Translations under genes and position numbers: made by a program
NCBI GenBank assembly: GCA_002104905.1
Contig: MCFE01000284.1
Span: 39,220-103,219, forward strand
From: Basidiobolus meristosporus CBS 931.73
Taxonomy: Eukaryota; Fungi; Basidiobolomycota
DNA length: 64,000 nucleotides
Direction of reading: 5' to 3'
In this document: positions 4,082 to 64,000 of the stretch, piece by piece
Numbering within the stretch: position 1 is the stretch's first letter
Layout: each line of letters starts with the position of its first letter
Notes under the pieces: model-generated
Seen by the model: only the letters and a program-made list of their open reading frames with translations
Told to the model about the DNA's origin: nothing
Databases searched by the model: none

Positions 4082-6458
4082 ATTGGCTATTGTAGCCCTA
4101 TATTGGTTTTTTAATCATCAAGTGGATGTAGAAACTACATATTTGAATGGAGAACTTGATGTGGATGTGTATATAGACCAGCCTGACAGGTTTTCTGCCT
4201 AAGACAGCTCCCATATTGGTCTACAAGCTTCAAGAATCTATATATGGTCTCAAACAATCACCAAGAGCCTAGAAATGCAAGAGAGATTTTTATTTGGAAT
4301 CTTTGAATTTCAAAAGGAGTAATGCTGACTCTAGTATATACTATAAGCCAGATAGAGCAAATCCAGCTCTATTAGCTCTATATGTGGATAGTCTTATTAT
4401 AGCTGCCAATAACCTTGCAACATTGGAAGAGACTAAATCCATCCTATCTAAGGAGTTCAAGATGTATAATCTAGGAGAACTCAGTTACTACTTTGGGATT
4501 AAGTTCTCCATAGACAGAAGTACCTAGACTATCACTCTAAGTCAGTCCAAGTATATTCAAAATATACTAAAGTACCAAATGGAAGACTGTAAACTGGCAG
4601 CTACCCCAATGACAATAAACCTTAACTTAATCAAAACTCAACCAAATCAAGAGAGCTTGGTCACATTTGAAAGCCCTGACTTTCCTTATCAGTCTATGGC
4701 TGGCAGTCTGATGTATAGCATGCTTGTAACATGTCCAGATATCTCATATTCAGTGGGAGTTGTCAGCCAGCATAATCAGAACTATGGATCTAATCATATT
4801 GCTGCAGTTAAGCGGATTTTTAGGTACTTGAAAGGAACTGCTGATATCTGCTTAAGATACACTTATAAGGATTCAGAACAGGATCTTGGGGGATATGCTG
4901 ATGATGATTGAGGATAAAACTTGGAAGGCAGAGGATCCACCACAGGATACAGTTTTCTTTACTGTAAAGGAGCAATTTCATATAATTTAAGAAAGCAACC
5001 AACTGTAGCACTCTCAACCACAGAGGCAGAGTATATGGCAGCCTGTGAAGTTACAAAAGAAGCAACAGGGCTAAGAAAGCTTTTTACAGACTGGGCCCTC
5101 TGTCAAAAAACACGTATTACTTTATTTCAGGATAATCAGGAATATATACTATCAGGTAGAAATCCAACTTTTCATGCTAGAACCAAGCACATAGATATTA
5201 GACATCATTTTATATGTGAAGATATAGAGAATATCTTAGTAAGCTTAGTTTACTGTCCTTCAGAAGAAATGATTGCAGAAATACTTACCAAGCCATTAGC
5301 TAGAGACAAGCTTGAATATCTTAGGTCAAAATTAGGGCTATTCAGTATGAACATTCAACTCAGTGGGAGTGTTACAAACATCTCTAATTCCACCTAAATA
5401 CTCACCTAACTTAGTCACTTAGATCATTACCTTCAAATCATAGGGGATACTGACCAAATTCCTTGTTGGTATTTACCTGCAATATTTCACCAAAACACCA
5501 GGCACATAGAACATCAAAATTAGATAAGTTGTCCAAGCAGCCCCCAACTTTGCACACATGCTCATGGGACCTTCCTTTGCTTATTCTATGTGCTTGTAAT
5601 GCCAAGACCATGTAAAAGTATAAGTACTACTTTTACTTTCAATAAATCATTAAGTGAAACCCACATAATCTACTTGTTTTCCCAGTAACTTCCAATATCT
5701 CCAAGACTCTTACAACACCAATAGTCTATAAAATTGGGAGACTAAGTGCAGCCTATCAAAGGAGTTAAGATGTCTGATTGAGGAAAGCTCAGTAACTACT
5801 TAGGGATCAAGTTCTCCATAGACAGAAGTACCCAGACTATCACCCTAAGCCAATCCAAGTATATTCAAGATATACTAAAGTAGTACCAAATGCAAGACTG
5901 TAAACTGGCAGCTACCCCATTGGAGACAAACCTTGAATTAGACAAAACTCAACCAAGCCCAAGAGAGCTTGGTGACATCTGAAAGCCCTGACTTTCCTTA
6001 TCAATCTATGGCTGGGAATTTGATGTATATTATGCTTGGAACATATCCATATATCTCATTTTCAGCTGGAATTGCCAGCCAGCACAATCAGAACTATGGA
6101 TCTGATCATATTACAGCAGTTACATGGACTTTTAGATATCTAAAAGGAACCGCTGATATCTGCTCAAGGTGCACCAAAAAGAATTCAGACACAATCTTGT
6201 GAGAAACTCTGATGCTGATTGGGGACAAAATTTAGATGACAGATGATCCTCCATGGGATATACTTTTGTTTGCTGTAGAGGAGCAATTTCATGGAACTCA
6301 AGAAAGCAACCCACTGTAGCACTTTCTACCTCAGAGGCAGAGTATATGGAAGCTTGTGAAGCTATCAGAGCAGCAATCTGGTTAAGGAAGCTTTTTAAGG
6401 ATTTAGACTTATATCAAAAAATGCCTTATACTTTCTTTCAAGATAGTAAATTATATAC

Positions 6459-19574: not shown

Positions 19575-21197
19575 CTATTCGGACTTCTTCTTCTTCTTCT
19601 TGTCCTTCTTCTCCTTCTTTGGCTCCTCGTCGTCGGACTCGGCCTTTCTCTTCTTCTCCTTCTTTTCCTTCTTCTCTTTCTTCTCCTTCTTCTCGGTCTT
19701 AGGGGTTTCAACGGCAGCCTCGCTGACCTCAGATTTGGATGGAGTGGTGGGGATGACTGCGTCAGTCTTGGCGTTGTAGCTATCGGTGTTGTTGTTGAAC
19801 TCGAACTTCTTCTGTCCCTTGGGGGTCTTGTTGGGGGTTCTGGCAGCTCCAGCAGCGAAGCGGCCCTCCAACTGACGAAGACGAGCCTCAACCTTGGCGC
19901 GGTTCTCCATACCAACCTCGGGTGTATCCTTGTCACCCAAAGCATCAACACGAATGGAGATGGCGGCCTTGGTAGCAAGCATACGAGCAATCTTACCCTT
20001 CATCTTGGGACCAGCTTGACCAATCAAGGAAGCATGGTAGATGAGACCGTACTTGGGTGTGTCGTGCTTGGTCTTGAGGGCTCTGAACAAAGCCTTCTCA
20101 GCACCAAGGATCTGGACAGTAGAGGCAGGATGCTTGGCAAGGTTCATGAGGGAACCGGCGTGTGCGATCAAACGAGCACCAACAAGCTCACCAACAAGGG
20201 TGGTAAGGTTGGGGGCGATGGCGACCATACGGTTCTTGAGGTATTCGTAAAGCTGGGTACGGTACTCGGTGATGGAGATGACCTGCTCACACAAGTGGGT
20301 GATGTTCATGATATCCTCGTCGGAGATTTCAGTACCCATAGAGATCTCAGCAGCATCCTTGAGTTCCTTCTCGAGCTCCTCAGGAAGAATGTTGGAGAGA
20401 TCAGTCTTGGAAGCATTGGTACGGAAGCCCATGGCCTTGACGACACGGGCGAAAGCCAAGTTGTCAACAATGATCTTGGCCATTTCAGGGAAATGCCATC
20501 CGTACCATTCCTTGGCGCGCATGGCGTAGGTGTTCAACTCCTTGTCCAAGTCATCAAGCAAAGCGATAGCCTGAACGATCATAGTATCAACCTTGTCGGG
20601 GGAGAACTTAAGCTTGTAACGAGAGAGGGAGTGGGAGAGACCAAGGGCCATAGCGTTCATATCCGATTGAGGGATACCGGTGAGGAGGGAAGAGATTTGA
20701 CTACGGATACCACGGTAAAGCTCGTTCACAGTAGAGTCGGAAAGGACCTTGATACCAAGCTTCTTGGAGATGGAACCACCTTGGGTATGGGGTTAGTAAA
20801 CGCGTGTGGGGCTGGAGCAGCAGGCGGTAGGAGAATATCTTACCAAGCTTGGAGTCGGCGACAATCAAACTCTCCTTCTTCATTTCTTTCTCGCTAATCT
20901 CGTCACTCAAGAATTTCTTCAAGCTTTTGTCGAGTTTGCCCTCAACGATGGCGGTGGCGGCGGACAAAGCCTCGATGGTGTTCTCGAATTTTTGGAACGC
21001 CTTCAATTTGATACTACGGAAAAGAAAGTGGGTTGAGTCAAAGGCAAAGGTACGCAGCATACAGTACACACTCACGCTTGGTTGGCCTTCTCGGCGGTCT
21101 CAAACTCCTTATACAGGTCATCGGGTTTCTCTATTTTACCGTCGTCCAAGAGTTTGAACAAGGCGTAACCGGCCGGGGTTTCGTGGAGGACCAACAT
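19575..21197 (-). CDS. NOP58: Box C/D snoRNP protein Nop58
   Basis: N-terminus [42 protein letters not shown]-like motif, [14 protein letters not shown]-rich tail; two short introns. Confidence 0.93.
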
Positions 21198-49656: not shown

Positions 49657-50003
49657 TGTTGTAAGAGTCTTGGAGATATTGGAAGTGTTTTGGAGAACAA
49701 GTAGATTATGTGGTTTTCACTTAATAATCTATTGGATGTAAAAGTAGTAGTTATACTGTTACATGGTCTTGGCATAACAAACACATAGAGTAGGTTTAAG
49801 AAGGTCCCAAGAACATGTGTGCAAAGTTTGGGGCTGTTTGGACAGCTTTGAGAATATTCATGTTCTGGGTACCTGATATTTTGGTGAAATATATTAGGTA
49901 AATCCCAACAAGCAATTTGGTCAGTATTCCCTAGGATTGAAGGTTATGATGTAAGTGACCAAGTTTGGTGAATATTTAGGTGGTATTACAAATTCTTACA
50001 ACA
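49657..50003 (-). mobile_element. Copia LTR with non-matching flanks
   Basis: TGTTG..CAACA; flanks on the element strand are CCAAT and ACTAC; adjacent to an RT fragment at 50004-50163. Confidence 0.85.
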
Positions 50004-50163
50004 ATTGGTGGCTATGATAAGACATCCACATATCAAGCTAATAGAACTGGATTTGCTCTCTCTGGCTTATAGTATATACTATAGTCAGCATTACTCCTTT
50101 TGAAACTCAAAGATTCCAAATAAAAATCTATCCTGCAATTCCAGGCTCTTGGTAATTGTTTTA

Positions 50164-51621
50164 TGTTGTAAGAGTCTTGGAGATATTGGAAGTGATTGGG
50201 AGAACAAGTAGATTATGTGGTTTTCACTTAATGATTTATTGAATGTAAAAGTAGTATTTATACTTTTACCTGGTCTTGGCATTACAAACACGTAGAATAG
50301 GTTAAGGAAGGTCCCAAGAACATGTGTGCAAGGTTTGGGGCTGTTTGGACAATTTTGAGAATTCTCATGTTCTGGGTACCTGGTATTTTGGTGAAAATAT
50401 TCTAAGTAAATCCCAACAAGGAATTTGGTCAGTATTCTCTAGGATATGAAGGTAATGATCTAAGTGACTAAGTTAGGTGAATATTTAGGTGGAAATACAA
50501 ATTTTTACAACACTCCCACTCAGCTAAATGTTCATACTGACTAGTCCTAATTTTGACCTAAGATATTCAAACTTGTCTCTAGCTAATGATTTGGTAAATA
50601 TGTCTGCAATCATTTCATCAGTAGGACAGTAAACTAAGCTAACTAGGTTATTCTCTATAGCTTCACATATGAAATGATGTCTAATATCCATGTGCTTGGT
50701 TCTAGCATGAAAAGTTGGATTTCTGCCTAAGAGTATACATCCTGGATTATCTTGAAACAAAGTAATAGGCATTTTTGACATAGGCCTAAGTCTGTAAAAG
50801 GTTTTCTAAACCACATTTCTTCTTTTTTAGCTTCACAGGCTGCCATATACTCTGCTTCTGTGGTAGAAAGTGCTACGGTTGGTTGCTTTCTTGAATTCCA
50901 TGAAATTGCTCCTTGACAGTAAAGAAAGGTGTATCCTGTGGTGGATCTTCTGTCTTCTAAATTTTGTCCCCAATCTGCATCAGAGTATCCCACAAGAGCT
51001 TGTTCTGAATCCTTATAAGTGTATCTTAAGCAGATATCAGCAGTTCCTTTTAGGTATCTAAATATCTGCTTAACTGCTGCAATATGATCAGATCCATAGT
51101 TTTGATTATGTTGGCTGACAACTTCCACTGAATATGAGATATCTGGACGTGTTCCAAGCATGATATACATCCAACTGCGGACCATGGATTGATAAGGAAA
51201 GTCAGGGCTTTCAGATGGCACCAAGCTCTCTTGATTTGGTTGAGTTTTGACCAAGTTAAGGTTTGTCTCCATTGGGGTAGCTGCCGGTTTACAGTCTTCC
51301 ATTTGGTACTTCTTTAGTATATCTTGAATATACTTGGATTGACTTAGGGTGATAGTCTGGGTACTTCTGTCTATGGAGAACTTAATCCCTAAGTAGTAAC
51401 TAAGTTCTCCTAGATTGAACATCTTGAACTCCTTAGATAGGCTGGATTTAGTCTCTTCCAATGTTTCTAGGTTATTGGTGGCTATAATAAGATCATCCAT
51501 ATATAGAGCTAATAGAACTGGATTTGCTCTATCTGGCTTATAGTATATACTATAGTCAGCATTACTCCTTTTGAATCTCAAAGAATCCAAATAAGAATCT
51601 ATCTTGCAATTCCAGGCTCTC
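50164..51621 (-). mobile_element. 3' half of a copia element (RT/RNase H, PPT, 3' LTR 50164-50512)
   Basis: ORFs 50727-51590 (LYMDDL, LGTRPDISYSV, SRKQPTVALSTTEAEY) and 50524-50781 (RTKHMDIRHHF); PPT next to the LTR; truncated at 51621. Confidence 0.9.
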
Positions 51622-52317
51622 TGTTGTGCATCAACATTTAAAACTTAGCCAATTTTACTTCGTTTGAAAATCTAGTACCCTAACTGATTTTCCCTAACCC
51701 AGACATAACAAATCCCAGTTACAGTTTATTTTATCCCACCTCAGAATCTATTTTTAGCTATCACACCTGATCTATTTCAAATGGTCATTACGTTATCAAC
51801 CTATCTGCCAAGCCTTCCCAGGTGATTAGTCATCTGAGATCTATCCAACCACTGTGCAGTTGCCAAGACATCAGTTGATTAATGATGTAATTTTCATTTA
51901 TCTTATGCACCTATGAACACCCATATTGATTTCAATCAATCCAGTCCCTTAGCGCTTACTAATTCAACTTGATCAGAAAAGTATAAATAAAGTTTACTGA
52001 ACCTTTTGGTTTAGTGTGTGTCTCAACGGAATTAAGATTCTGTCTCAGCAAAAATAAGAATCCAACAATTCTGTTCTAGTTTCTATCCAAGCCTAGTATA
52101 TCTAGCACCCCAAAGAACACCAAGCCTAGCCTGCCTAGCAAACAAATATCATTGTCTTTATAGCCAACCCAGCTATATCCAAGACCAATATTAGATCAGA
52201 ATCTTTCTGCTAATATTTCCGCCACTCTCTGACAATTCTAAGATTCTGCACTTAATTGTCCCTTTGGTTCAGTTAAACCATTCAAGAGCTTTATTACACT
52301 TTCTCTTGGATACAACA
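51622..52317. mobile_element. Candidate 696-bp LTR of a different family, with non-matching flanks
   Basis: Begins TGTTG and ends CAACA exactly where the copia RT (left) and the LINE RT frame (right) break off; TATAAATAAA inside; flanks CTCTC and ATAAG. Confidence 0.5.
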
Positions 52318-53222
52318 ATAAGTGGTAGATTGCATATTTGGATGCAAAATGTAGGCCTTTGAGTCCTGATATAAAGCCATGATAAGAGCTGTAATTGAAG
52401 GTCCAGCAAAAGCTTCAAGATTTCTCCAAAGTAGGTTACGGTCAACTGCATCAAATGCACGGGTAATATCCAAGAGTACTGCTGGAAATTTGTTACAGAG
52501 TGTGTGGTCATGGCTTAGCATGACAGCCATTTCTAGCAAGACTCTAGGTATAAAACCAAACTGATTTGCTACAAACAAGCCACTAGATGAGAGTTGCAAA
52601 GCAATTAACAGTTCCAATACCTTTCTGCAAGCTGATAAGAGGGAAACAGGGCAATAGGATTCTGCCAGTTTGGCTGAGCCTCTACCTTTGTATAGAGGAA
52701 TCACCTTTGCAACCAGCCATTCCAATGGCATTTGCACATGTGAAATACACTGCAAATAGAATGGGAGCAATATATGTGCCATGGCAGCAGGTGCCAGCTT
52801 CAAGATTTCATATGTTATATTGTCATGACCTGGTGCGGTATTGTTGGGTAGCTTATGAAGAGTTGCCTCTAAAGTAGCTGCATCCAGGTTAATTGCGTGA
52901 GAGCAATCTCTTGAAGTAGCTGTATAGGGCTTGGAGCTGTATATGTCTTGCACAAAGAAAGCAGCAGCTAAAAGATTGGGACTTGGTAGATCTTTTGAAG
53001 CTGGCTGTAGAGCTTGATATATTCTTGATATGCTTCTAGTGGTGTCTGCAGCAGTCTTCAGTGGTAGAGAGTGCATTATATGATTCCAGTAGGATGCATG
53101 TTTTTGAAGATTTTGAAGTTTCACATATTTGCCTGCATCATCCAATAGCTGCTTTGGTGAGGGGTTAGGGAATTGGCAATAGCTCTGGGACAGTGCATAC
53201 ACTATGTTATGCCACTTAGGGG
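52318..53222 (-). pseudogene. RT fragment of a second, divergent telomeric LINE family
   Basis: About 300 open codons colinear with ORF2 (APGHDNITYE, IPLYKGRG, QFGF, LDITRAFDAVDRNLLW); cut before the QG motif by the LTR candidate. Confidence 0.85.
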
Positions 53223-53330
53223 CTAGGGGAGGGAAAGTCACCAAGGTAGGTGAAATCTTTATTTGATTTAGGGGGGAGACAGTCACCAACAGGTGAAATC
53301 TTTATTTCAGTTGAAACAAAGAAGCCAGCG

Positions 53331-56099
53331 CTACTGTTGTAGCTTTGATACAAGAGTGTGTAGCTGAGGGGAATTTGTAGGTAAGTTAATAAGAAGTGAT
53401 GATAGTTCTTCAGTGCTCAAGACACTGTTCAGTGGGAAGGGGGGTAGCATGAGAGGTAAGAATGCCTTGTGAACAACATTAATGAGGGGAATGTGATAAG
53501 GATTGATATTCATCATAAAGGGAGTGTGCTGCTGCAGATATTGCTGCCAAAGGTCTGTCAAGTACTTCAGGTAGGCCAGCTTGGGTTTTTCTGACTGCAG
53601 AATATAGTGAGCAAACTTCTTGACTTCAGGATCTCCAAGTATAGTTCTCCAGCAGGAGTCAGGTGTTGTGTGGTGTGTTCTCTTCCAGGCCTTAATCAGT
53701 GGGTTGTTGCAGTTGTGAAGTCTGAGGTATAATCTGGTTCTAAGGTAGAGAAGTCTGATCTTATAGGGCATAAACCCAAAAGCACCAAGAATAGCATGTC
53801 TGTAGGGGCATTCAGGCAAATGAGGCACCAAGGAGGTAATGCACCATACTGCAAACTTGTCAAGCTTAGTGCAGTCTCTAGAAGTAAGAGAGAGAAGTGG
53901 TAAGCCAAATTCCAGGACAGGGAAGACAAACTGCTTGAGTAGAAGGAGGCAGCTGGGAGCTGAAGTTGTAGGAGGAGTAACAGCCAGTAGCTTGTGGAGT
54001 GCCTGTCTTGCCAGGATAATTCTCTTCTTCAGGTGTGCTCCAGAGTCTAGTCCAGTAGGAAGGAAAGGAAAGCCAAGATATGTAGCAGAAACCTGAGCAG
54101 GTAGAGTGGAGTTCTCCAAGTTGATGGGAGAGCCCAAAGGTACTGTCTTTGCAATGGAAAGCTGGAGATTATTCTTCTGCAGATACTGGTGGATGGTCTG
54201 GGAGTCTTGTTGCACATTGGAGGAGGATATTCTGATGTCATCAGCAAAGAGAGTAACCAGGCAGTCAGCTGAGAGTCTTGGGAAATCATTCAGGAAGATG
54301 GCAAACAGTATAGGACCAAGCACAGAGCCTTGAACCACTCCATTAGGAACTGAGAACACAGCTGATTGCTCACTTGGGTGCAGAATTCTTGCTTGTGGAT
54401 CCAGAAACAGAGATCTGACAAGGAGGGTGAGAGAGGTACTGGAGAAGCATTGCAACTTGGACCAAAGCAGATTTCTGTCAACTGAATCAAAGGCCTTAGT
54501 AATATCAAACAGAACAGAGGGATACTTGCACTGGAGAGAGTGATCTTGGCTAAGTATGACTGCATATTCCAAGGAGAGGCCAGGAACAAAGCCAAACTGT
54601 GCAGGATGAAACTTGAGGGAGTCAGAGTAGAGCTCCTGAGCAAGCAGAAGCTCAAACACCTTTCTGCAGGTGGGCAGCAGAGATATTGGCCTGTAGGAGC
54701 TAGGATCCAGGTGCTTTCCTTTACCCTTGTACAGTGGCAGAACATTTGCAAAGGACCATTCCTCAGGAGTAGAAAGCTGGGCTGAGCATTGCTGAAACAG
54801 TGGAAGCAGAAGTGCAGACATGGCCTTGGTACTAGTCTTCAGAAGCTCATAAGAGATTGTGTCCACACCTGGAGCAGTAGAGTTGGGAAGCCTCTTGAGC
54901 ACATTATGGATTCTCCTTTGATCAAGTGCAAGTGGGATGGGCAGAGTCTTGAAGTCAGGATGAAAGCCAGGAGTTGAGTACTGCTTTGTAGAGAAGAAGA
55001 TGTTAGCCAGCTGTTCTGTTGAAGGTAACTTCCTGGAAGAGGGCCTCATTGCCCTGTAGAGTCTTGATACTGTTCTTGTTATAGAGTTGGAAGATTGCAG
55101 AGGCAAAGAACTCATAATATGATCCCAGAGCTGAGTATGCAGAGTGTGGTGAATTGCCTTGGAGTGGTGTATTGCTGTCAGGAGGAGTTTCTCTGTTTTT
55201 GGGTTAGGGAAACTCAGGTAGCTTTGTTGCAGGGCTGAAACAATGGATTCCCATTTTCTTGAGGTAACAGCAGTAGTCTTGCATGGCAGTGAGAGGGAGG
55301 CAGACACCAGAATCAGATGCTTCACAAAGAGCCAGGCATAGTTGAGATCATCTGGCAGAGAAAGTAGCAAACTGGCAAGCTTCAAGTAGTTCCCAAAGTC
55401 TTTCTTCTGATTCTTGGTAGCTTTGTGGGTGAGCACAGTAAGTTTTGGCAGCTTCTTCTTCACAACTGGTTGCATAGAAAGGGACCAGGCTGGGTGGTCA
55501 GAGGCTCTCAAGGATCCTAGCTCAGCTCCAGAGAATTGCTTAACTTCATTCACAAAGTAGAGGGCAGCAGCAGAAGGGCAGATCCAGTCAACACATCTTT
55601 TCTCAGATTGAGCACCTAGTGCTAGCAGGTGGCTTTCTCTCAGGAAGTTCAGTAGGAATGTAGACCTTGGCTTCATTCTTGCAGTCAGAGTAGTCTTGTT
55701 CTCAGGATGGGGAATGTTGAGATCTCCAAGCAAGATAACAGGTGTTGATATAGATTGTTGGTATTGCTGAACCTTCTGGCATATAACTTGCACTTCCTGA
55801 AGGGCAAGACTTGGAGGCAGATAGCAGAGCACCAGACTGATAGTTGGCAACTGGAGAGCAGCACAGTAAGGGGAGTAAAGAGGAACACAGAGCTGAGGAG
55901 TATTGATGGTAGAAGAGATGAAGCAGATAGAGGAGGTATTCTTTGTTCTAGGAGTAGAAAAGCAATATAGATTAGTCAAAAGTATAGAGGGTAGCTGGAC
56001 ATCAATCAAACACAGGAGGGAAAATCTTGAAAGAAGTCTCTCTAGAGTTGGTCTTGATGGCTGTATGCTGTTGCAGTTAAGCAACAGAACTTCAGGTAG
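53331..56099 (-). CDS. ORF2: APE-type endonuclease plus LINE-type reverse transcriptase
   Basis: APE motifs LLLNCNS, CYLPPS, LGDLN, VDWI, SDH; RT motifs APGVDTI, YRPISLL, QFGF, FDITKAFDSVDR, GVVQGSVLGP, LFADDI, YLGF. No ATG precedes the APE domain. Confidence 0.93.
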   Translation of the reverse strand, partial: LPEVLLLNCNSIQPSRPTLERLLSRFSLLCLIDVQLPSILLTNLYCFSTPRTKNTSSICFISSTINTPQLCVPLYSPYCAALQLPTISLVLCYLPPSLALQEVQVICQKVQQYQQSISTPVILLGDLNIPHPENKTTLTARMKPRSTFLLNFLRESHLLALGAQSEKRCVDWICPSAAALYFVNEVKQFSGAELGSLRASDHPAWSLSMQPVVKKKLPKLTVLTHKATKNQKKDFGNYLKLASLLLSLPDDLNYAWLFVKHLILVSASLSLPCKTTAVTSRKWESIVSALQQSYLSFPNPKTEKLLLTAIHHSKAIHHTLHTQLWDHIMSSLPLQSSNSITRTVSRLYRAMRPSSRKLPSTEQLANIFFSTKQYSTPGFHPDFKTLPIPLALDQRRIHNVLKRLPNSTAPGVDTISYELLKTSTKAMSALLLPLFQQCSAQLSTPEEWSFANVLPLYKGKGKHLDPSSYRPISLLPTCRKVFELLLAQELYSDSLKFHPAQFGFVPGLSLEYAVILSQDHSLQCKYPSVLFDITKAFDSVDRNLLWSKLQCFSSTSLTLLVRSLFLDPQARILHPSEQSAVFSVPNGVVQGSVLGPILFAIFLNDFPRLSADCLVTLFADDIRISSSNVQQDSQTIHQYLQKNNLQLSIAKTVPLGSPINLENSTLPAQVSATYLGFPFLPTGLDSGAHLKKRIILARQALHKLLAVTPPTTSAPSCLLLLKQFVFPVLEFGLPLLSLTSRDCTKLDKFAVWCITSLVPHLPECPYRHAILGAFGFMPYKIRLLYLRTRLYLRLHNCNNPLIKAWKRTHHTTPDSCWRTILGDPEVKKFAHYILQSEKPKLAYLKYLTDLWQQYLQQHTPFMMNINPYHIPLINVVHKAFLPLMLPPFPLNSVLSTEELSSLLINLPTNSPQLHTLVSKLQQ

Positions 56100-57608
56100 T
56101 CAGGCAGAGGTTGTAGCTTCTTCAGAGGCAGCATTGACAATGTGACCTGCAGAGTCCCAGAGCTCTTCAAATGGTGCATCACTTAAGTCAGCAAGGAGGG
56201 AAATGGCATGATTCTTGAGGAAGTATGCCACATCATAGGAGGGGGCTTGTCTCTTGATGGCAGCAAAGAAAGACAGAATGGCAACATGGGCTGGAGGCTT
56301 GTTGAACAGTAGAGAGTCAGAGGATTCAGATTCTTCAGGCACTATCTTGAAGTCAGTTTTCAGCCAGTTAAGGTTCTTCTCCACAAAGGCAACAAATGGG
56401 TCAGCAATGTTTTGGTCTAGGATAACCTCCAGAATCTTCCCTTTTCTCCAGGCCAGGTTGACAATTCTTGAGAGCTGAATATTGCATGCCTTGAGTGCTT
56501 TCCTGATGTTGGAAATGGGAGTCCAGGGAACTTGCTTCAAGTACACCACAGTCCAGGTAGAAGCTGGTGGTAGGTTTGCTGGGGGCTTGTAAGTCCTTCT
56601 GTGTTGCAATGGAGCTGCAGTAGTCAGATTGGAGTCCACATTCTCAGTAGAAGGTTTTCTTGATGTGTCTTGCTGAATAGTACTGGAGCTGGATGTGCTG
56701 ATAATTCTTGCTAGAACCTTGCCTGCATAAGTCTGAGGTATAGCTGAGGTGACTGTAGAGGTGGTGGCAGCTGGTGCAGGTGGAGAGGCAGAGACTGAAG
56801 CAGGAACTGAGGTCACCTGGGAGAAGGCAGTAGAAGCAGGTTTTCTGGGAGGAACAGAGTTCACTATCCAGTTGTTCTGTAAAACACTGGAGTAGCTTTT
56901 CTGTGGAACAGGATCTTGCTCTTGAACAGGAACAGAAGCAGGAGGCTGGGGCTGAGCAGTAGTGGTAAGGCAGTGGCACTCCAAGGAAGCTTTTTGCAAG
57001 GCATCTCTGGCAGTTTTCAGGGCAGTATTGGCTTCATTCTTGAGCTTCTTGCATTGGGCATCCAGTCTCTTGTTTTCAATAGCCAGGGCAGTATTGGCAG
57101 CCTCTAAATCAGCAATTCTCTTCTCAATTGCAAGGAATCTCTGAAGAAATGCATCAGTAGAAGTGCTGGCATCTGGGAGAGCAGTGGCAGGAATAGAGTC
57201 CATTGACAGTGGGCTTCTTGGAGGCAAGGAAAGTGGACTGGCAGATTCAGGCACAAAAGGAGATATCCTGGCAGGAGGAGAAGGAGTATCCAAGGCAGTA
57301 ACAGAGGCAATTCTTGTTGGTGAAGCAGCAGCAGGGGAGGCAAGCCTGTTCAGAAACTGGGCAGGAGAGAGTGCTTGAGGAGAGGGAGTCTTCAGCTTGC
57401 CAAGCATGTCTTCCATCAGAGTGATACCAATATTCCTGGTGCATTTGCAGAGAAAAGTAAGCTTCCTGAGTCTGCCAGCTCTTCCATTCCTTCTGATAGT
57501 TCCTTTGTTTCCACAGTTGGGGCAAGAAATCTTCTTGACAGACTTGTCAAAGCAATCAAGAACCTTCCTTTCAGGTGTAGTGGGCTCCTGTTGAGGTTTT
57601 GGTGGCAT
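56100..57608 (-). CDS. ORF1 (502 aa): N-terminal Cys4 motif, coiled coil, Ser/Pro/Thr-rich linker, conserved C-terminal domain
   Basis: ATG at 57608; CPNC-x21-CKC; heptad stretch LAIEKRIADLEAANTALAIENKRL; C-terminal domain homologous to the ORFs at 58500 and 60596. Confidence 0.88.
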   Translation of the reverse strand: MPPKPQQEPTTPERKVLDCFDKSVKKISCPNCGNKGTIRRNGRAGRLRKLTFLCKCTRNIGITLMEDMLGKLKTPSPQALSPAQFLNRLASPAAASPTRIASVTALDTPSPPARISPFVPESASPLSLPPRSPLSMDSIPATALPDASTSTDAFLQRFLAIEKRIADLEAANTALAIENKRLDAQCKKLKNEANTALKTARDALQKASLECHCLTTTAQPQPPASVPVQEQDPVPQKSYSSVLQNNWIVNSVPPRKPASTAFSQVTSVPASVSASPPAPAATTSTVTSAIPQTYAGKVLARIISTSSSSTIQQDTSRKPSTENVDSNLTTAAPLQHRRTYKPPANLPPASTWTVVYLKQVPWTPISNIRKALKACNIQLSRIVNLAWRKGKILEVILDQNIADPFVAFVEKNLNWLKTDFKIVPEESESSDSLLFNKPPAHVAILSFFAAIKRQAPSYDVAYFLKNHAISLLADLSDAPFEELWDSAGHIVNAASEEATTSA

Positions 57609-57838
57609 ATCCAGAGTTTCAGCTTCAAATTTCAATTTTTGAGATTTTTGGGTGATTTTTGATGGGCGGGATCAAAATTAGGGTTAGGGTTGCGCGCTGT
57701 GACTGCTTTTTACGATCGCAAGGTCAGAACCTAGGAAAAAATAAAAATAGTTAGTAAAGGTGATTTAATGGATGGATGGATGGATTGGAGTCAGATTCAA
57801 TCAAAAAATCAAATCGTTGACTAATTTAAAGAGGGTTA

Positions 57839-58364
57839 GGGGGGGAGGAAAGTCACCAAGTGGTGAAATCTTTATTTACTTATGACAAGTATCTAAAGAA
57901 GCCAAGTTAATCTGAAGTAATTCCTAGAAAGCTAGGTCTGAGAGATATCTTCCTGGTAAGCCAGGTCTGAGAGTTGAGAAGCTGAGTGGTACTATATTTC
58001 CTAGTTAGCTAGGTCTGAGAGAGGTTTCCTGGAAAGCCAGGCCTGAGAAGTGAGAATCTGAATATATCTGAGCTAAGTTATACTGGTTTGCGGTAGCTGA
58101 ATTGTGGCCGGAATGGCCAGTAGACTGGGGGAACTGAGATGAATTTCTGGGCGATCACTGGCCAAATTTACTAGGCAAATCTGACCAATTAGCATTTCAA
58201 GGATTTCAGCCAATCAGAGCCTTTACTTTGCCCGATGGTTGATCAAGCCATCTCCCAATGAGCACACATCAATTTATTGATCAAATTTTGCTGGATCCAG
58301 GATTTGAACCCACAACCATGGGTATGGAAGGGTTAGGGATAACCACAAGGCTAAGTGTTCTTGG
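57839..58364 (-). mobile_element. tRNA-headed SINE-like element, copy 1
   Basis: A-box-like TAGCCTTGTGG (58343-58353) and B box GGTTCAAATCC (58300-58310) 32 nt apart; no ORF; four-hairpin body; LINE-type 3' double hairpin; flanked by TTAGGG units. Confidence 0.82.
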
Positions 58365-58373
58365 TTAGGGTTA

Positions 58374-59205
58374 GGGGAGGGAAAGTCACCAAGGTAGGTG
58401 AAATCTTTATTTGATTTCAGACAAGTCTAACTACAAATAAAGAAGCCAGCTGGGAATAGAAGATTCCCAAAGTAAACACTAAGTTGAATATGAATAAATC
58501 TAAGCTAAAGTTAAGGCAGTATCCCAGAGTACACTGGAGTTCAGGTTCATGGGGGAGTGAAGTAGATAAGCTTGAGAGATATAATAATCTTTGAGGAAGT
58601 GGGTAACAGCAGGTGAAGGGGAGTTTTTGATAAGTGAAGTGAATCTTGAGAGCAGAGATTCCTCTAATGAGAAGGTCTTGTAAACTGGAGAATCAGGAAA
58701 CTCTTTAAAGGCATGGTCAGTAGGTTCCCAGTAAAACTGGTCAGAGACATTTTGAGAGAATTGTGTTGCAATACTTTTGTCAAGTACTACCTCCAGAGTG
58801 TGATGGTTGATAAATCTCATGTTAACAATTTTGGATAAATTGTAACCTTGTTGCTTGAGATACATCCTATGCTCAGATATGGGAATAAACTCCACATTGG
58901 CAAAGTAGCAGACAGTCCAGTCAGTAGCAGGAGGTAAATCAGAATTGGCAGGAAACTTTCTTTTAGTCTTGGGAGGAGCAGCAGCATGTCTTGAGGGAGC
59001 AGGAACAGGCTTTTTGACAGCTTCAGAGTAGGAAGAGTGAGCAGGAGCAGGTGATTCTTGGGGAGTCTTGTTGACAGGAAGAGTTGGCACAGGGACAATA
59101 GATTCTTGCAGATCAGAAAAGGCAGAGAACAACTTTTGAACTTGTTTCTTGAGTAGAGCATTTTCAGCTTCAACAAGTGCAAGCCTTTCCTCAAGGAAGG
59201 AAATC
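58374..59205 (-). mobile_element. ORF1-only module A (5'-truncated), CDS 58500 to about 59205
   Basis: Coiled coil (FLEERLALVEAENALL) plus ORF1-type C-terminal domain (LPPATDWTVCY..PISEHR..KIVN..LEVVLD); own 3' UTR and hairpin; no RT. Confidence 0.85.
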
Positions 59206-59214
59206 TTAGGGTTA

Positions 59215-59977
59215 GGGGGGGAGACAGTCACCAACAGGTGAAATCTTTATTTCAGTTGAAACAAAGAAGCCAGCGCTACTGTTGTAGCTTTGATACAAGA
59301 GTGTGTAGCTGAGGGGAATTTGTAGGTAAGTTAATAAGAAGTGATGATAGTTCTTCAGTGCTAAACACACTGTTCAGTGGGAAGGGGGGTAGCAAGAGAG
59401 GTAAGAATGACTTGTGAACAACATTAATGAGGGGAATGTGATAAGGATTGATATTCATCATAAAGGGAGTGTGCTGCTGCAGATATTGCTGCCAAAGGTC
59501 TGTCAAGTACTTTAGGTAGGCCAGCTTGGGCTTTTCTGACTGCAGAATAAATTCAGCAAACTTCTTGACTTCAGGATCTCCAAGTATAGTTCTCCAGCAG
59601 GAGTCAGGTGTAGTGTGGTGTGTTCTCTTCCAGGCCTTAATCAGTGGGTTGTTGCAGTTGTGAAGTCTGAGGTATAATCTGGTTCTAAGGTAGAGAAGTC
59701 TGATCTTATAGGGCATAAACCCAAAAGCACCAAGAATAGCATGTCTGTAGGGCATTCAGGCAAATGAGGCACCAAGGAGGTAATGCACCATACTGCAAAC
59801 TTGTCAAGCTTAGTGCAGTCTCTAGAAGTAAGAGAGAGAAGCGTAAGCCAAATTCCAGAACAGGGAAGACAAACTGCTTGAGTAGAAGGAGGCAGCTTGG
59901 AGCTGAAGTTGTAGGAGGAGTAACAGCCAGTAGCTTGTGGAGTGCCTGTCTTGCCAGGATAATTCTCTTCTTCAGGT
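59215..59977 (-). mobile_element. 5'-truncated copy of the APE-RT LINE (3' about 760 bp, frameshifted)
   Basis: Near-identical to 53270-54034; 1-bp deletion at about 59750; ends TTCAGGT then TAGGG. Confidence 0.93.
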
Positions 59978-59980
59978 TAG

Positions 59981-60501
59981 GGAGGAAAGTCACCAAGTGG
60001 TGAAATCTTTATTTACTTATGACAAGTATCTAAAGAAGCCAAGTTAATCTGAAGTTACTCCTAGAAAGCTAGGTCTGAGAGATATCTTCCTGGTAAGCCA
60101 GGTCTGAGAGTTGAGAAGCTGAGTGGTACTATATTTCCTAGTTAGCTAGGTCTGAGAGAGGTTTCCTGGAAAGCCAGGCCTGAGAAGTGAGAATCTGAAT
60201 ATATCTGAGCTAAGTTATACTGGTTTGCGGTAGCTGAATTGTGGCCGGAATGGCCAGTAGACTGGGGGAACTGAGATGAATTTCTGGGCGATCACTGGCC
60301 AAATTTACTAGGCAAATCTGACCAATTAGCATTTCAAGGATTTCAGCCAATCAGAGCCTTTACTTTGCCCGATGGTTGATCAAGCCATCTCCCAATGAGC
60401 ACACATCAATTTATTGAACAAATTTTGCTGGATCCAGGATTTGAACCCACAACCATGAGTATGGAAGGGTTAGGGATAACCACAAGGCTAAGTGTTCTTG
60501 G
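59981..60501 (-). mobile_element. tRNA-headed SINE-like element, copy 2
   Basis: Same ends as copy 1 with about 4 substitutions seen; B box 60437-60447, A-box-like 60480-60490. Confidence 0.82.
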
Positions 60502-60504
60502 TTA

Positions 60505-61808
60505 GGGGGATGATAATCACCACAGGGTGAAATCTTTATTTAAATTGTAAATAAAGAAGCCAAGTTTGAATATGAATATCTGAGATAAAGTAAGCCTACA
60601 AGATAAACTTGGACTTTGCTGTATCCCAGATATCCTCAATATCAAAGTTTAGAGGAGAATGTAGCAAAACTGCTTGTTCACTGTAGTATTTCTTGAGGAA
60701 GTTTGTGACTTGAAGGGAAGGAGAGTTTTTCAACAAGCTGGTAAACCTTTTGAGGAGTTCTTTTTCCAGAGAGAATGGTACAAAGAGTGGAATGTCTAAA
60801 TGATGTCTGAATATATGCTCTGAGAGCTCCCAATCCAGCATATTTTTGACTTCCTCTGTAAAATCTTCCACAATATCTTTGTCAAGAATGACTTCCAAGA
60901 GATCCCTGGCAATGTACTGAATGTTAATAATCTTGGGCATATGAATACCTAGGTCCTTGAGGTAGTTTCTTTGTTCTGAAATTGGAAGATAGCCAGCATT
61001 TCTGAAATAGCAAACAGCCCAATTGGCAGTGGGAGGAGTATCAGGGCTGACAGGAAATCTTCTTCTGGCTTTAGGGTGCACTGGCTTAGGTGGCTGTCTT
61101 ATTGGGAGAACAGTGGACTTTGGATGAGCTTGAAGTGCTTGGGAGTATGTCTGAGTATGAATGGCAGGAGTTGCTGGTTGCTGACAGTGTTCAGATTGAC
61201 TGGAAGAAGTGCTGGTTGAGGGGTTGCAAGGTAAGGAAGTAGCTGAAAGAGAAGTAGAGAGTGCTGGGTGAAGTTCAGAGAGAGTTTTGAAAAGAACCTG
61301 GATCTGAGATTTCAACATTGAGTTTTCAGCTTCAAGAAGAGAAACTCTTTGTTCAAGGTAAGAAGTCTGTAAAGAGTGAAAGTTGGGTAAAGACATGGAA
61401 GAAGTAGATAATAAGAAGAAATGAGTAGTTGGGGTGGGAGGGAGGGAAAATAGTTAAGAAGAAAAGAGAGGAAAGATCTGAAATTGAAAATCTCAGAATT
61501 TATAGATGGATGGACAAGGGTAAAGGATAGATTAATCCAGGGTTAGGGAAAAATAGTTAAGAAGAAAAGAGAGGAAAGATCTGAAATTGAAAATCTCAGA
61601 ATTTATAGATGGATGGACAAGGGTAAAGGATAGATTAATCCAGGGTTAGGGAAAAATAGTTAAGAAGAAAAGAGAGGAAAGATCTGAAATTGAAAATCTC
61701 AGAATTTATAGATGGATGGACAAGGGTAAAGGATAGATTAATCCAGGGTTAGGGAAAAATAGTTAAGAAGAAAAGAGAGGGAAAAATAGTTAAGAAGAAA
61801 AGAGAGGG
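60505..61808 (-). mobile_element. ORF1-only module B (complete 266-aa CDS 60596-61396 with repeated 5' leader)
   Basis: ATG-initiated ORF: coiled coil YLEQRVSLLEAENSML plus ORF1-type domain (TPPTANWAVCY..PISEQR..KIIN..LEVILD); 3' double hairpin; no RT. Confidence 0.87.
61447..61808. repeat. 103-bp tandem repeat x3 plus two 27-bp partial units; each full unit ends in GGGTTAGGG
   Basis: The TAGTTAAG marker recurs at 61451, 61554, 61657, 61760 and 61787. Confidence 0.95.
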
Positions 61809-61813
61809 ATTTA

Positions 61814-63807
61814 GGGGGGAGACAGTCACCAACAGGTGAAATCTTTATTTCAGTTGAAACAAAGAAGCCAGCGCTACTGTTGTAGCTTTGATACAAGAGT
61901 GTGTAGCTGAGGGGAATTAGTAGGTAAGTTAATAAGAAGTGATGATAGTTCTTCAGTGCTCAAGACACTGTTCAGTGGGAAGGGGGGTAGCAAGAGAGGT
62001 AAGAATGACTTGTGAACAACATTAATGAGGGGAATGTGATAAGGATTGATATTCATCATAAAGGGAGTGTGCTGCTGCAGATATTGCTGCCAAAGGTCTG
62101 TCAAGTACTTCAGGTAGGCCAGCTTGGGTTTTTCTGACTGCAGAATAAATTCAGCAAACTTCTTGACTTCAGGATCTCCAAGTATGGTTCTCCAGCAGGA
62201 GCCAGGTGTTGTGTGGTGTGTTCTCTTCCAGGCCTTAATCAGTGGGTTGTTGCAGTTGTGAAGTCTGAGGTATAATCTGGTTCTTAGGTAGAGAAGTCTG
62301 ATCTTATAGGGCATAAACCCAAAAGCACCAAGAATAGCATGTCTGTAGGGGCATTCAGGCAAATGAGGCACCAAGGAGGTAATGCACCATACTGCAAACT
62401 TGTCAAGCTTAGTGCAGTCTCTAGAAGTAAGAGAGAGAAGTGGTAAGCCAAATTCCAGGACAGGGAAGACAAACTGCTTGAGTAGAAGGAGGCAGCTGGG
62501 AGCTGAAGTTGTAGGAGGAGTAACAGCCAGTAGCTTGTGGAGTGCCTGTCTTGCTAGGATAATTCTCTTCTTCATGTGTGCTCCAGAGTCTAGTCCAGTA
62601 GGAAGGAAAGGAAAGCCAAGATATGTAGCAGAAACCTGAGCAGGTAGAGTGGAGTTCTCCAAGTTGATGGGAGTGCCCAAAGGTACTGTCTTTGCAATGG
62701 AAAGCTGGAGATTATTCTTCTGCAGATACTGGTGGATGGTCTGGGAGTCTTGTTGCACATTGGAGGAGGATATTCTGATGTCATCAGCAAAGAGAGTAAC
62801 CAGGCAGTCAGCTGAGAGTCTTGGGAAATCATTCAGGAAGATGGCAAACAGTATAGGACCAAGCACAGAGCCTTGAACGACTCCATTAGGAACTGAGAAC
62901 ACTGGTGATTGCTCACTTGGGTGCAGAATTCTTGCTTGTGGATCCAGAAACAGAGACCTGACAAGGAGGGTGAGAGAGGTACTGGAGAAGCATTGCAACT
63001 TGGACCAAAGCAGATTTCTGTCAACTGAATCAAAGGCCTTAGTAATATCAAACAGAACAGAGGGATACTTGCACTGGAGAGAGTGATCTTGGCTAAGTAT
63101 GACTGCATATTCCAAGGAGAGGCCAGGAACAAAGCCAAACTGTGCAGGATGAAACTTGAGGGAGTCAGAGTAGAGCTCCTGAGCAAGCAGAAGCTCAAAC
63201 ACCTTTCTGCAGGTGGGCAGCAGAGATATTGGTCTGTAGGAGCTAGGATCCAGGTGCTTTCCTTTACCCTTGTACAGTGGCAGAACATTTGCAAAGGACC
63301 ATTCCTCAGGAGTAGAAAGCTGGGCTGAGCATTGCTGAAACAGTGGAAGCAGAAGTGCAGACATGGCCTTGGTACTAGTCTTCAGAAGCTCATAGGAGAT
63401 TGTGTCCACACCTGGAGCAGTAGAGTTGGGAAGCCTCTTGAGCACATTATGGATTCTCCCTTGATCAAGTGCAAGTGGGATGGGCAGAGTCTTGAAGTCA
63501 GGATGAAAGCCAGGAGTTGAGTACTGCTTTGTAGAGAAGAAGATGTTAGCCAGCTGTTCTGTTGAAGGTAACTTCCTGGAAGAGGGCCTCATTGCCCTGT
63601 AGAGTCTTGATACTGTTCTTGTTATAGAGTTGGAAGATTGCAGAGGCAAGGAACTCATAATATGATCCCAGAGCTGAGTATGCAGAGTGTGGTGAATTGC
63701 CTTGGAGTGGTGTATTGCTGTCAGGAGGAGTTTCTCTGTTTTTGGGTTAGGGAAACTCAGGTAGCTTTGTTGCAGGGCTGAAACAATGGATTCCCATTTT
63801 CTTGAGG
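61814..63807 (-). mobile_element. Terminal 5'-truncated LINE copy (open RT frame 61874 to about 63806, no APE or ORF1)
   Basis: Near-identical to 53270-55263; frame open; capped directly by telomeric repeats. Confidence 0.94.
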
Positions 63808-64000
63808 GTTAGGGTAGGGTTAGGGTTAGGGTTAGGGTTAGGGTTAGGGTTAGGGTTAGGGTTAGGGTTAGGGTTAGGGTTAGGGTTAGGGTTAGGGTTA
63901 GGGTTAGGGTTAGGGTTAGGGTTAGGGTTAGGGTTAGGGTTAGGGTTAGGGTTAGGGTTAGGGTTAGGGTTAGGGTTAGGGTTAGGGTTAGGGTTAGGGT
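63808..64000 (+). repeat. Telomere (TTAGGG)n, about 32 units
   Basis: Uninterrupted TTAGGG to the window end, with one TAGGG variant at 63815-63819. Confidence 0.98.

Follow-up and report, generated by a model that had tools for sequence, protein, structure and literature searches.

What kind of genetic system has stacked nine retroelement pieces, all in one orientation, against the telomere repeats at the end of a fungal contig, and by what route did they arrive there? Telomere-specific retrotransposons occur in insects, Giardia, Chlorella, rotifers, and ascomycete and basidiomycete fungi, and to our knowledge each of these cases shows only part of the combination described here. The contig belongs to Basidiobolus meristosporus CBS 931.73, and all coordinates refer to the plus strand of the 64,000-nt stretch that was analyzed (MCFE01000284.1:39,220-103,219), hereafter the window. 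The reading that we favor, with a probability of about 0.8, is that Basidiobolus possesses a telomere-specialized set of non-LTR retroelements that adds its copies at chromosome ends.

The array takes up the last 11.7 kb of the contig and consists of nine retroelement pieces, all encoded on the minus strand (window 52306-63807; Table 1), whose 3' ends all face the centromere and after which at least 31 TTAGGG units close the contig. Sequence reading and self-comparison bear out the first-pass annotation, which had proposed nine co-oriented modules with their 3' ends toward the centromere at a TTAGGG end, with two amendments: the leader (U) of the full-length LINE was absent from its list of modules, and the telomere units that do join the modules number one or two, not zero to two, each being fused to a G-run of variable length. 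Leader U sits beyond the LINE body in five of five full-length copies inspected, and a U-like leader adjoins the 5' end of a relative with 63% amino acid identity; the idea that U is a separate mini-element was rejected, since it lacks the common tail and always accompanies full-length LINE copies. On the proximal side the array is bordered by the lineage 2 fragment, whose 3' part is cut off. Eight other lineage 2 copies (94-99% identity) cover 52306-53216 and run on 3' into their own tail, and because they align straight across it, the TTAGGG at 53165 is internal to the lineage 2 element.

Table 1. Features of the terminal array, mapped by sequence reading and self-comparison (window coordinates).
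Feature	Position	Strand	Basis or remark
LINE lineage 2 fragment, RT region	52306-53215	-	Pfam RVT_1 match on ORF 52294-53289
Element A stub, last ~42 nt of tail only	53226-53267	-	53216-53269 vs 58365-58417, 96%
Full-length LINE including leader U	53274-57835	-	at least 30 full-length copies, 99-100% identity
LINE body	53274-57677	-	internal (TTAGGG)2 5'-ward of body at 57678-57689
LINE leader U, 146 bp	57690-57835	-	
LINE ORF1, 502 aa from ATG	56100-57608	-	translation, alignment with relatives, conserved stop context
LINE ORF2, 922 aa, APE then RT	53331-56099	-	Pfam RVT_1, E=2.6e-25
SINE, 523 nt, non-coding	57842-58364	-	minus-strand reading; A-/B-box-like motifs in head, LINE-type tail
Element A, 5'-incomplete copy	58377-59205	-	ORF1-like gene only
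LINE 3' fragment, 759 nt	59218-59976	-	97.9% identical to 53268-54034
Second SINE copy	59983-60501	-	99.2% identical to 57843-58370
Element B, ORF1-like gene only	60508-61810	-	tail, intact 266-aa ORF, 5' tandem monomers
Element B ORF, 266 aa	60596-61396	-	intact
Element B 5' monomers, 103 bp, about 3.5 copies	61443-61810	-	GGGTTAGGG in each
Outermost LINE without 5' end, RT and C-terminal region only	61817-63807	-	RVT_1 match; 99.0% identity over 2000 nt to 53265-55264 of full copy
Terminal telomere tract, at least 31 TTAGGG units	63809-64000	+	reaches end of contig (C573)

The intact autonomous member in the window is the lineage 1 LINE, and 808 LINE 3' ends were counted in the genome. Its ORF1 combines a zinc-ribbon-like CxxC...CxC motif, a coiled coil, and a conserved C-terminal domain, and its RT is of the non-LTR type, the best solved relative being human L1 ORF2p (E=6e-13). 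The APE is N-terminal in ORF2, where the Pfam match to Exo_endo_phos_2 is weak and below cut-off. A single APE sequence gave no match among solved structures; only a profile, built with canonical APE-LINEs included, succeeded, retrieving the L1 endonuclease (2e-17) and the TRAS1 endonuclease (1.7e-9). In the alignment with canonical APE-LINEs, the motifs N, Y, D-x-N, H, D, and D-H are kept in all lineages and the catalytic E has become D, likewise in all, while a dN/dS of about 0.14 (a rough value, as are all dN/dS values given here, because dS between lineages is saturated) indicates purifying selection. Judged by its sequence, ORF2 carries an APE in which the catalytic residues are kept. At least three RT lineages in the genome, with 46-52% amino acid identity among them, bear this type of tail, so that the original proposal of one RT mobilizing all partners was too narrow. 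Beyond five close relatives, the next database matches are at most 32% identical and are mostly insect APE-LINEs.

Elements A and B each carry an ORF1 paralogue only. The A copy in the window has lost its 5' monomers and, from its ORF, the start codon and a few initial codons; full-length A elsewhere has an intact 242-aa ORF, and all 21 of the 21 ungapped full-length A ORFs are intact. With a similarly rough dN/dS of 0.29, and with variable sites distributed 33/13/48 over the three codon positions, element A is, on these substitution patterns, under purifying selection. The A and B proteins are 43% identical (E=1e-68), and both resemble the C-terminal domain of LINE ORF1 (30-36% identity, E=1e-17 to 2e-22), which agrees with the first-pass view of two gag-only paralogues and makes them true paralogues of that domain. 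Because A, B, and LINE ORF1 have the domain in common, the module bodies are not all unrelated, and of the claim that four unrelated bodies share one tail it is the tail that stands. An AlphaFold model of the B protein contains a helix at residues 6-42, a beta-alpha-beta-beta-alpha-beta domain at residues 126-192 (pLDDT about 90), and a helical C-terminus. It gave middling matches to many RRMs (Z 6-7.8 by VIA-align) and no match at E<=1e-3 in a Foldseek search, and there was no Pfam Transposase_22 match. On the strength of the B model, the ORF1-like proteins of A and B would combine a coiled coil with an RRM-like fold. The presence of an ORF1 paralogue only, intact and under selection in A, and the location in telomeric arrays are features reminiscent of the Gag-only element HeT-A, a likeness that we regard as functional and not as one of shared descent.

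The SINE matches the A box at 10 of 11 positions (element nt 12-22) and the B box at 10 of 11 (nt 55-65), its full-length copies have one defined 5' end, and its 46-nt tail is 91% identical to that of the LINE; no ORF is present in its 523 nt, and 461 SINE 3' ends were counted in the genome. The A-box and B-box matches point to a Pol III-type non-autonomous member. Its earlier classification as a tRNA-SINE holds as regards the boxes and the LINE-like tail, but not as regards a tRNA, for which there was no homology by ARAGORN, relaxed thresholds included, and no Rfam match at E<=1. The sole Rfam match in the region, mir-318, scored 29.8 bits against a cut-off of 70 and was dismissed as chance.

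The modules are united by a 3' tail of about 45-70 nt, common to all families, that ends in a C-run and UAA, with no poly(A). In self-comparison, the tails of the LINE, SINE, A, and B can be aligned for 46-66 nt at 83-92% identity, in keeping with the single 3' terminal structure first proposed for them, and lineage 2 copies elsewhere end in a related tail. A chance origin of the tail is excluded, because its 16-nt core is present in 1739 copies (1589 + 150) in the 89-Mb genome, in which the reversed core, used as a control, has none. The 3' module in the RNA of every member would start with a box, GCUUCUUU(A/G)UUU, able to pair with AAAUAAAGA, and continue with a UCACC-loop-GGUGA hairpin, a short spacer, the C-run, and UAA. 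Neither tail hairpin shows covariation, because the arms are nearly invariant, and the hairpin structure is compatible with the data and as yet unproven. The tails of A and the SINE are closer to that of lineage C than to that of the LINE in the window, and the B tail resembles a lineage-2-like tail.

The arrangement seen in the window recurs throughout the genome. At 48 other loci, all 165 fragments were co-oriented, and 128 of the 139 that were not cut by the edge of a locus begin at the 3' end of an element, with variable 5' ends; 26 of the 165 were cut by the locus edge, and about five are truly 3'-truncated, such that about 96% of fragments have intact 3' ends. Tail-bearing elements were nowhere nested in one another at these loci, and in the two elements that are split, a SINE in L008 and a LINE in L006, the insert is unrelated. 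Terminal TTAGGG tracts follow the arrays at contigs C1, C2, and C21 and at 15 of another 29 loci with A, and the orientation is reversed at left-hand contig ends (C27, C80, and C291). The modules also recur at many other contig ends in fresh combinations, the absence of which would, by the first-pass annotation, have refuted the proposal. Collapse or chaining of repeats at contig ends during assembly might be thought to produce such a picture, given that many short contigs are arrays only and that the tail core has an odd strand bias (1589 forward against 150 reverse). This explanation is, however, very improbable, as the same rules hold at more than 40 independent loci with unique junctions, and the same architecture is present in contigs assembled independently from other samples: in those of at least three independent public runs, elements are stacked head to tail and their tail, again the same, is followed by CCCTAA.

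The junctions between modules are highly uniform. Of 115 analyzed, 108 have (T)TA and a G-run of 3-11, 84 (73%) contain exactly one telomere unit, and none has poly(A). The preceding element and the unit share 2 nt or more of microhomology at 40 of 91 junctions, where about 6 are expected by chance, and 3 nt or more at 22 of them, where about 1.4 are expected. Microhomology of 1-3 nt is likewise enriched at the junctions. Taken with the co-orientation, the intact 3' ends, and the lack of nesting, the one-unit junctions and the microhomology fit stepwise addition of cDNA to G-strand 3' ends. Since the SINE, A, and B encode no RT and have the LINE-type tail and the junction signature in common, their mobilization in trans is the only reasonable reading. 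These sequences support the view of the modules as a telomere-specialized retroelement set with a trans-mobilized SINE, A, and B, and in part the first-pass interpretation as a whole.

In the mechanism that we propose, the LINE RT would recognize the 3' module, as in stringent-type LINE/SINE pairs, and the C-run/UAA end of the RNA would align on the 3'-OH of the G strand, so that the cDNA would be a direct extension of that strand. Copies would join the physical end one by one, generating a head-to-tail array with 5' ends outward, and telomerase-type TTAGGG would then cap the outermost copy. The single TTA+G(n) junction unit would most simply be copied from the incoming RNA, and if so the primer would usually be an end without a repeat tract, whereby each addition would heal an eroded end. 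The APE might serve in making or trimming the primer, or in nicking the first repeat. An intact APE under purifying selection is nonetheless superfluous in a pure end-priming model and counts against this explanation. Nor do the arrays show an age gradient: the copy in the distal position was closer to the others in eight pairs and further from them in six, and a pattern of youngest copies outermost was not reproducible in this sample.

Both of these observations are accommodated by site-specific insertion of the kind performed by TRAS1 of Bombyx, in which G-strand priming places the 3' end toward the centromere. The APE would nick the G strand in a TTAGGG unit, which may be the first repeat beside the last element or a junction unit, and target-primed reverse transcription (TPRT) would start there; arrays would also grow from within, and one-unit junctions would be self-perpetuating. 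The retention of catalytic residues under purifying selection in all lineages, the long terminal tracts that adjoin one-unit internal junctions, and the TRAS1-like orientation are all in accord with such an account. On the other hand, the perfect (TTAGGG)2 in the LINE leader is unbroken in five of five copies, as are the units in the B monomers, and the preceding element's own bases often supply part of the junction unit; furthermore, a repeat-specific enzyme should leave proximal tracts of widely varying length, whereas 73% of junctions have a single unit. We therefore hold insertion by APE nicking to be possible but doubtful.

A role for recombination must also be considered, and it does shape the arrays to some degree, because some are interrupted by copia elements or by segments with host-like genes. 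In its strong form, this explanation sees the elements as largely fossils, in arrays whose present spread is due mainly to recombination from one chromosome end to another, through ALT-like break-induced replication or gene conversion, and it can draw on copies that differ by 1-2.5% and are not identical, on array segments parted by repeated Kelch/SNF2-related ORF segments and copia elements, and on the border of the window array, which is a break inside an element. Module order and truncation points nevertheless differ at nearly every locus, A ORFs have remained intact under purifying selection without exception, and full-length LINE copies at 99-100% identity are abundant, while the preservation of 3' ends together with 5' truncation at variable points is a signature of reverse transcription and not of recombination. 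Recombination as the main present means of spread is thus improbable. Stepwise addition at chromosome ends, the reading that we prefer, would operate next to telomerase-type repeats: a TERT RBD is present in the genome, the RBD being the part of TERT that was located, and together with the long terminal tracts it argues for the coexistence that the first-pass annotation had suggested.

Several known systems share parts of this organization. TRAS1 and SART1 of Bombyx mori (R1 clade) are likewise LINEs with APE and RT that occupy telomeric repeats only, in fixed orientation, and coexist with telomerase-type repeats. They have a poly(A) end and a CCHC ORF1, whereas the Basidiobolus elements have a C-run and UAA and an ORF1 with a coiled coil and a putative RRM-like domain, in which neither Pfam nor the translation of the LINE ORF1 revealed CCHC knuckles; direct stacking with one or two units between copies is also a Basidiobolus feature. 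The reviews consulted (PMC10088271, PMC4700185) mention neither a SINE nor an ORF1-only partner of TRAS/SART. The present set is distinguished from them by tail and ORF1 features. HeT-A, TART, and TAHRE of Drosophila also lie head to tail, their 3' ends facing the centromere, in arrays of strand-biased composition; HeT-A, being Gag-only and dependent on the RT of a partner, can be compared with A and B, and TART and TAHRE keep an APE domain despite attaching to ends, as do the LINEs here. Drosophila, however, has no telomerase, no TTAGGG-type repeats, oligo(A) junctions, and no SINE member, in contrast to the long terminal TTAGGG tracts and TERT RBD of Basidiobolus.

Among fungi, MoTeR1/2, Cnl1, and FoTeR are confined to telomeres and have telomere motifs at their junctions, and their 5' ends carry variable tandem repeats and telomere-like motifs, with MoTeR2 as a non-autonomous partner; in their single ORF the RT is followed C-terminally by a REL endonuclease, and they cluster with CRE and SLACS (PMC12857005). 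The Basidiobolus LINEs, which have two ORFs, an APE that is N-terminal, and both a SINE and ORF1-only elements as partners, differ from this CRE-type organization, which argues for an independent origin. Athena/Coprina and the rotifer Terminons resemble the present set in orientation and in the short repeats between copies, and are added to ends by way of 3' telomere-repeat stretches able to pair with the G overhang, but they have a Penelope-like RT without endonuclease, where Basidiobolus has a LINE-type RT (RVT_1) and a conserved APE. Stringent-type LINE/SINE pairs such as eel UnaL2/UnaSINE1, in which the SINE copies the stem-loop tail of the LINE and is read by its RT, insert genome-wide, in contrast to a set that is confined to chromosome ends and whose tail ends in a telomere unit. 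Zebrafish LINEs provide another stringent-type example (PMC4176376).

Our search of the literature found no paper describing such a system in Basidiobolus or other early-diverging fungi, which sustains the earlier impression that the combination is undescribed in fungi. It comprises several old APE-LINE lineages, ORF1-only partners under purifying selection, an end-confined SINE, telomere-unit 3' ends in place of poly(A), normal TTAGGG caps, and a TERT gene. Because this early-diverging fungus combines all these features, it offers a culturable system in which to ask how a retroelement RT picks a chromosome end, whether an APE is needed at a natural end, and how a Drosophila-like telomere could evolve from a telomerase telomere. 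A bolder and rather unlikely proposition is that the set forms a working second arm of telomere maintenance beside telomerase, in which tract-less ends would be healed by LINE, SINE, or ORF1-only cDNA with its RNA-borne unit, and the TTAGGG seeds built into the 5' region of every element would recall telomerase or capping proteins. If true, Basidiobolus would represent a living intermediate between telomerase-only telomeres and the transposon-only telomeres of Drosophila and would hold the first SINE specialized for chromosome ends, and the set might be related to the many small telomere-bearing Basidiobolus contigs.

The full-length LINE is of interest beyond the telomere for the way in which its two ORFs are connected. 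The stop of ORF1 is a UGA at 56100-56102, after which ORF2 continues in the same frame, and this one conserved in-frame UGA, which takes the form UGA-CUN in four relatives of 45-63% identity, is all that parts them. ORF2 is probably made by read-through of the single UGA, which makes the element a clear example of a LINE whose ORF1:ORF2 ratio is probably controlled in this way.

Known telomeric retroelements, as surveyed in 2023, comprise SART/TRAS, GilM/GilT, Zepp, MoTeR, Tx1-1_ACar, Athena, and the Drosophila elements (PMC10088271), and those of fungi, including the FoTeRs described in 2025, belong to the CRE clade with a REL endonuclease (PMC12857005), whereas the LINE of Basidiobolus carries an APE endonuclease. 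A literature search, with subscription journals outside its reach, turned up no publication about telomeric elements of Basidiobolus or about a telomere-specific SINE, in keeping with the first-pass annotation, to which no such combination was known in fungi. The elements at the distal end of the window are therefore classed as an independent system of telomeric retroelements, APE-type and with multiple members, belonging to an early-diverging fungus with telomerase-type repeats as well.

The array was mapped by reading window positions 52001-64000 and comparing that stretch with itself. It holds nine retroelement pieces in one orientation, all on the minus strand, followed by terminal TTAGGG units, and the window ends where the contig ends. 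The nine co-oriented modules and telomere proposed earlier are thus borne out, with three corrections: a leader (U) had been missed, a TTAGGG at 53165 belongs inside the lineage 2 fragment, and the window junctions hold one or two telomere units, never zero. GC skew is +0.17 to +0.35 over 52000-64000 and about 0 in the remaining window, the telomeric G strand of the array being G-rich; the same has been reported for other telomeric retroelements (PMC10088271).

Features of the window and of one further locus (window coordinates unless a locus is named)
Feature	Position	Strand	Remark
Nop58 exon	19575-20729		95% identity to Nop58 of B. meristosporus CBS 931.73 and B. ranarum, confirming the genus
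LINE lineage 2 fragment	52306-53215	-	most proximal piece
A stub	53226-53267	-	42 nt
Full LINE body (lineage 1)	53274-57677	-	distal neighbours (TTAGGG)2, then U
(TTAGGG)2	57678-57689		between LINE body and leader
Leader U	57690-57835	-	146 bp
SINE, first copy	57842-58364	-	
GGGTTAGGG	58331-58339		within SINE head
A without its 5' end	58377-59205	-	
LINE 3' fragment	59218-59976	-	759 nt
SINE, second copy	59983-60501	-	
B	60508-61810	-	ORF intact; about 3.5 monomers of 103 bp
5' monomers of B	61443-61810		one telomere unit per 101-103-bp monomer, in A and B
LINE without 5' end	61817-63807	-	2 kb; most distal piece
Telomere tract	63809-64000		at least 31 TTAGGG units, at contig end
Lineage C element	L008:3314-6281		about 3 kb; RT-only ORF 3733-5154 (-), 119-bp 5' monomers, A-like tail

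Across the genome, the core of the 3' tail shared by all families (it ends in a C-run plus UAA, with no poly(A)) occurs 1589 times forward and 150 times reverse, against 0 in the control, a strand bias that puts the arrays nearly always at right contig ends. There are 808 LINE and 461 SINE 3' ends, and full-length copies of the LINE number at least 30, at 99-100% identity. Three other contigs (C1, C2, and C21) terminate in an array and then a TTAGGG tract, left-end arrays being inverted; contig C291, with inverted arrays at both ends (~2-3 kb and ~155-157 kb), may be a small telomere-to-telomere contig. The first-pass annotation had staked its proposal on modules recurring in new combinations at other chromosome ends, and module order indeed differs at all 29 other loci holding A, at 15 of which the terminal tract is reached within 1.5 kb.

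At the other array loci all 165 fragments are co-oriented; 128 of them start from the 3' terminus of the element, the locus boundary cuts 26, and only about five show a real 3' truncation. No tail-bearing element lay within another in the array loci examined. Of 115 3' junctions, 108 show (T)TA followed by a run of 3-11 G (exactly one unit in 84, two in 15, more in nine). An overlap of 2 nt or more between the unit and the element before it is seen in 40 of 91 junctions, and one of 3 nt or more in 22, where about 6 and 1.4, respectively, were calculated for chance. Orientation and junctions together require that first-strand cDNA extends a G-strand 3'-OH. Because co-orientation is universal, 3' ends are intact, and tail-bearing elements are never nested, new copies would be added stepwise at the chromosome end. 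The junction unit would be copied from the C(n)UAA terminus of the RNA itself, as suggested by three features: most junctions hold one unit, to which the neighbour contributes some of the bases; the G-run varies; and a long tract is restricted to the very end. The receiving ends would have lost their repeats and would be capped afterwards by telomerase, a TERT RBD being present in the genome. Telomere units lie near the 5' end in every family, where they may seed capping or provide a start for telomerase.

A serious rival is a TRAS1-like APE nick in the first repeat or in the junction units, since the conserved APE counts against pure end priming. Also against pure end priming, no age gradient was found along the arrays. 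LINE ORF2 matches RVT_1 (E=2.6e-25) and, weakly, APE; aligned with canonical APE-LINEs, it retains all APE catalytic motifs except the usual E, replaced by D (LIDV) in every lineage. A profile built from this alignment, canonical APE-LINEs included, finds the endonucleases of L1 (2e-17) and TRAS1 (1.7e-9), and APE dN/dS against the relatives is ~0.14, near the RT value, both being rough because dS is saturated.

Each of the five full-length copies visible has U next to the LINE body, and in a relative with 63% amino acid identity a homologue lies immediately against the 5' end; U is therefore read as a 5' leader that belongs to the LINE itself and has two telomere units embedded in it. ORF1 and ORF2 share one frame, with a single UGA then CUN between them (56100-56102, minus strand), a layout kept in four relatives of 45-63% amino acid identity (loci L051, L052, L053, and L054), which makes programmed stop-codon read-through likely.

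The protein of A has 242 aa at full length and that of B 266 aa; they share 43% identity, and each matches the last 155 residues of LINE ORF1 at 30-36%, so that their description as gag-only paralogues holds and the module bodies are not all unrelated as proposed. The A ORF is intact in 21 of 21 ungapped full-length copies sampled, with a dN/dS of 0.29 and variation biased to third codon positions. The AlphaFold model of B comprises a long N-terminal helix, a disordered linker, a beta-alpha-beta-beta-alpha-beta domain (pLDDT ~90), and a helical end; many RRMs match the domain at Z 6-7.8, and a Foldseek search with the model gave no significant match. The SINE is 523 nt, non-coding, and has one defined 5' end. 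Its A and B boxes each match at 10 of 11 positions, spaced as in a tRNA gene, and neither ARAGORN nor Rfam recognises a tRNA, leaving a tRNA derivation, as in the earlier label tRNA-SINE, plausible.

In an alignment of ten distinct tails, three of them from a related organism and the others from LINE, SINE, A, B, B', lineage C, and lineage 2, every tail has GCUUCUUU(A/G)UUU ... AAAUAAAGAUU(U/A)CACC - loop - GGUG(A/G) - spacer - C-run. Two hairpins are predicted (z about -5 for LINE and B); 96% of cells in the hairpin alignment pair, with invariant arms that cannot confirm the fold by covariation. The tails of A and SINE resemble that of lineage C, and that of B a lineage-2-like tail.

Where a single RT had been supposed, the genome holds at least three lineages; the three are 46-52% identical to each other. 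Lineage C shares 52% identity with the LINE of the window and 67% with one relative from another sample; given these divergences, the lineages are old. Five related proteins (48-80% identity) come from ENA and Logan assemblies, where they lie on short contigs, database matches beyond these reaching at most 32%. Contigs from at least three of the source runs carry the tail, then CCCTAA units, then the next element, so that the system is conserved beyond this assembly.

Recombination also acts on the arrays, since the window's array starts at a break inside an element and copia elements and Kelch/SNF2-related segments interrupt arrays elsewhere. At the border (49800-52306), the lineage-2 LINE is truncated at 52306 on its 3' side, and beside it lie the remnant of a copia RT (50727-51590) and a segment of ~480 bp that is duplicated; the array was therefore joined to the chromosome arm by break or recombination, not insertion. 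Three loci (L009:5455-6729; L007:2932-4260; L004:1548-6774) show such interruptions: on two contigs, Kelch and SNF2-related ORFs turn up repeatedly between stretches of array and might represent a subtelomeric helicase-like gene family, and on contig C14 an array is interrupted by a copia LTR element. In a SINE (L008:6286-7164) and in a LINE (L006, C27:1949-5185), an unrelated insert of 350-690 bp splits the element, with a short overlap resembling a target-site duplication, so that other transposons also land in the arrays.
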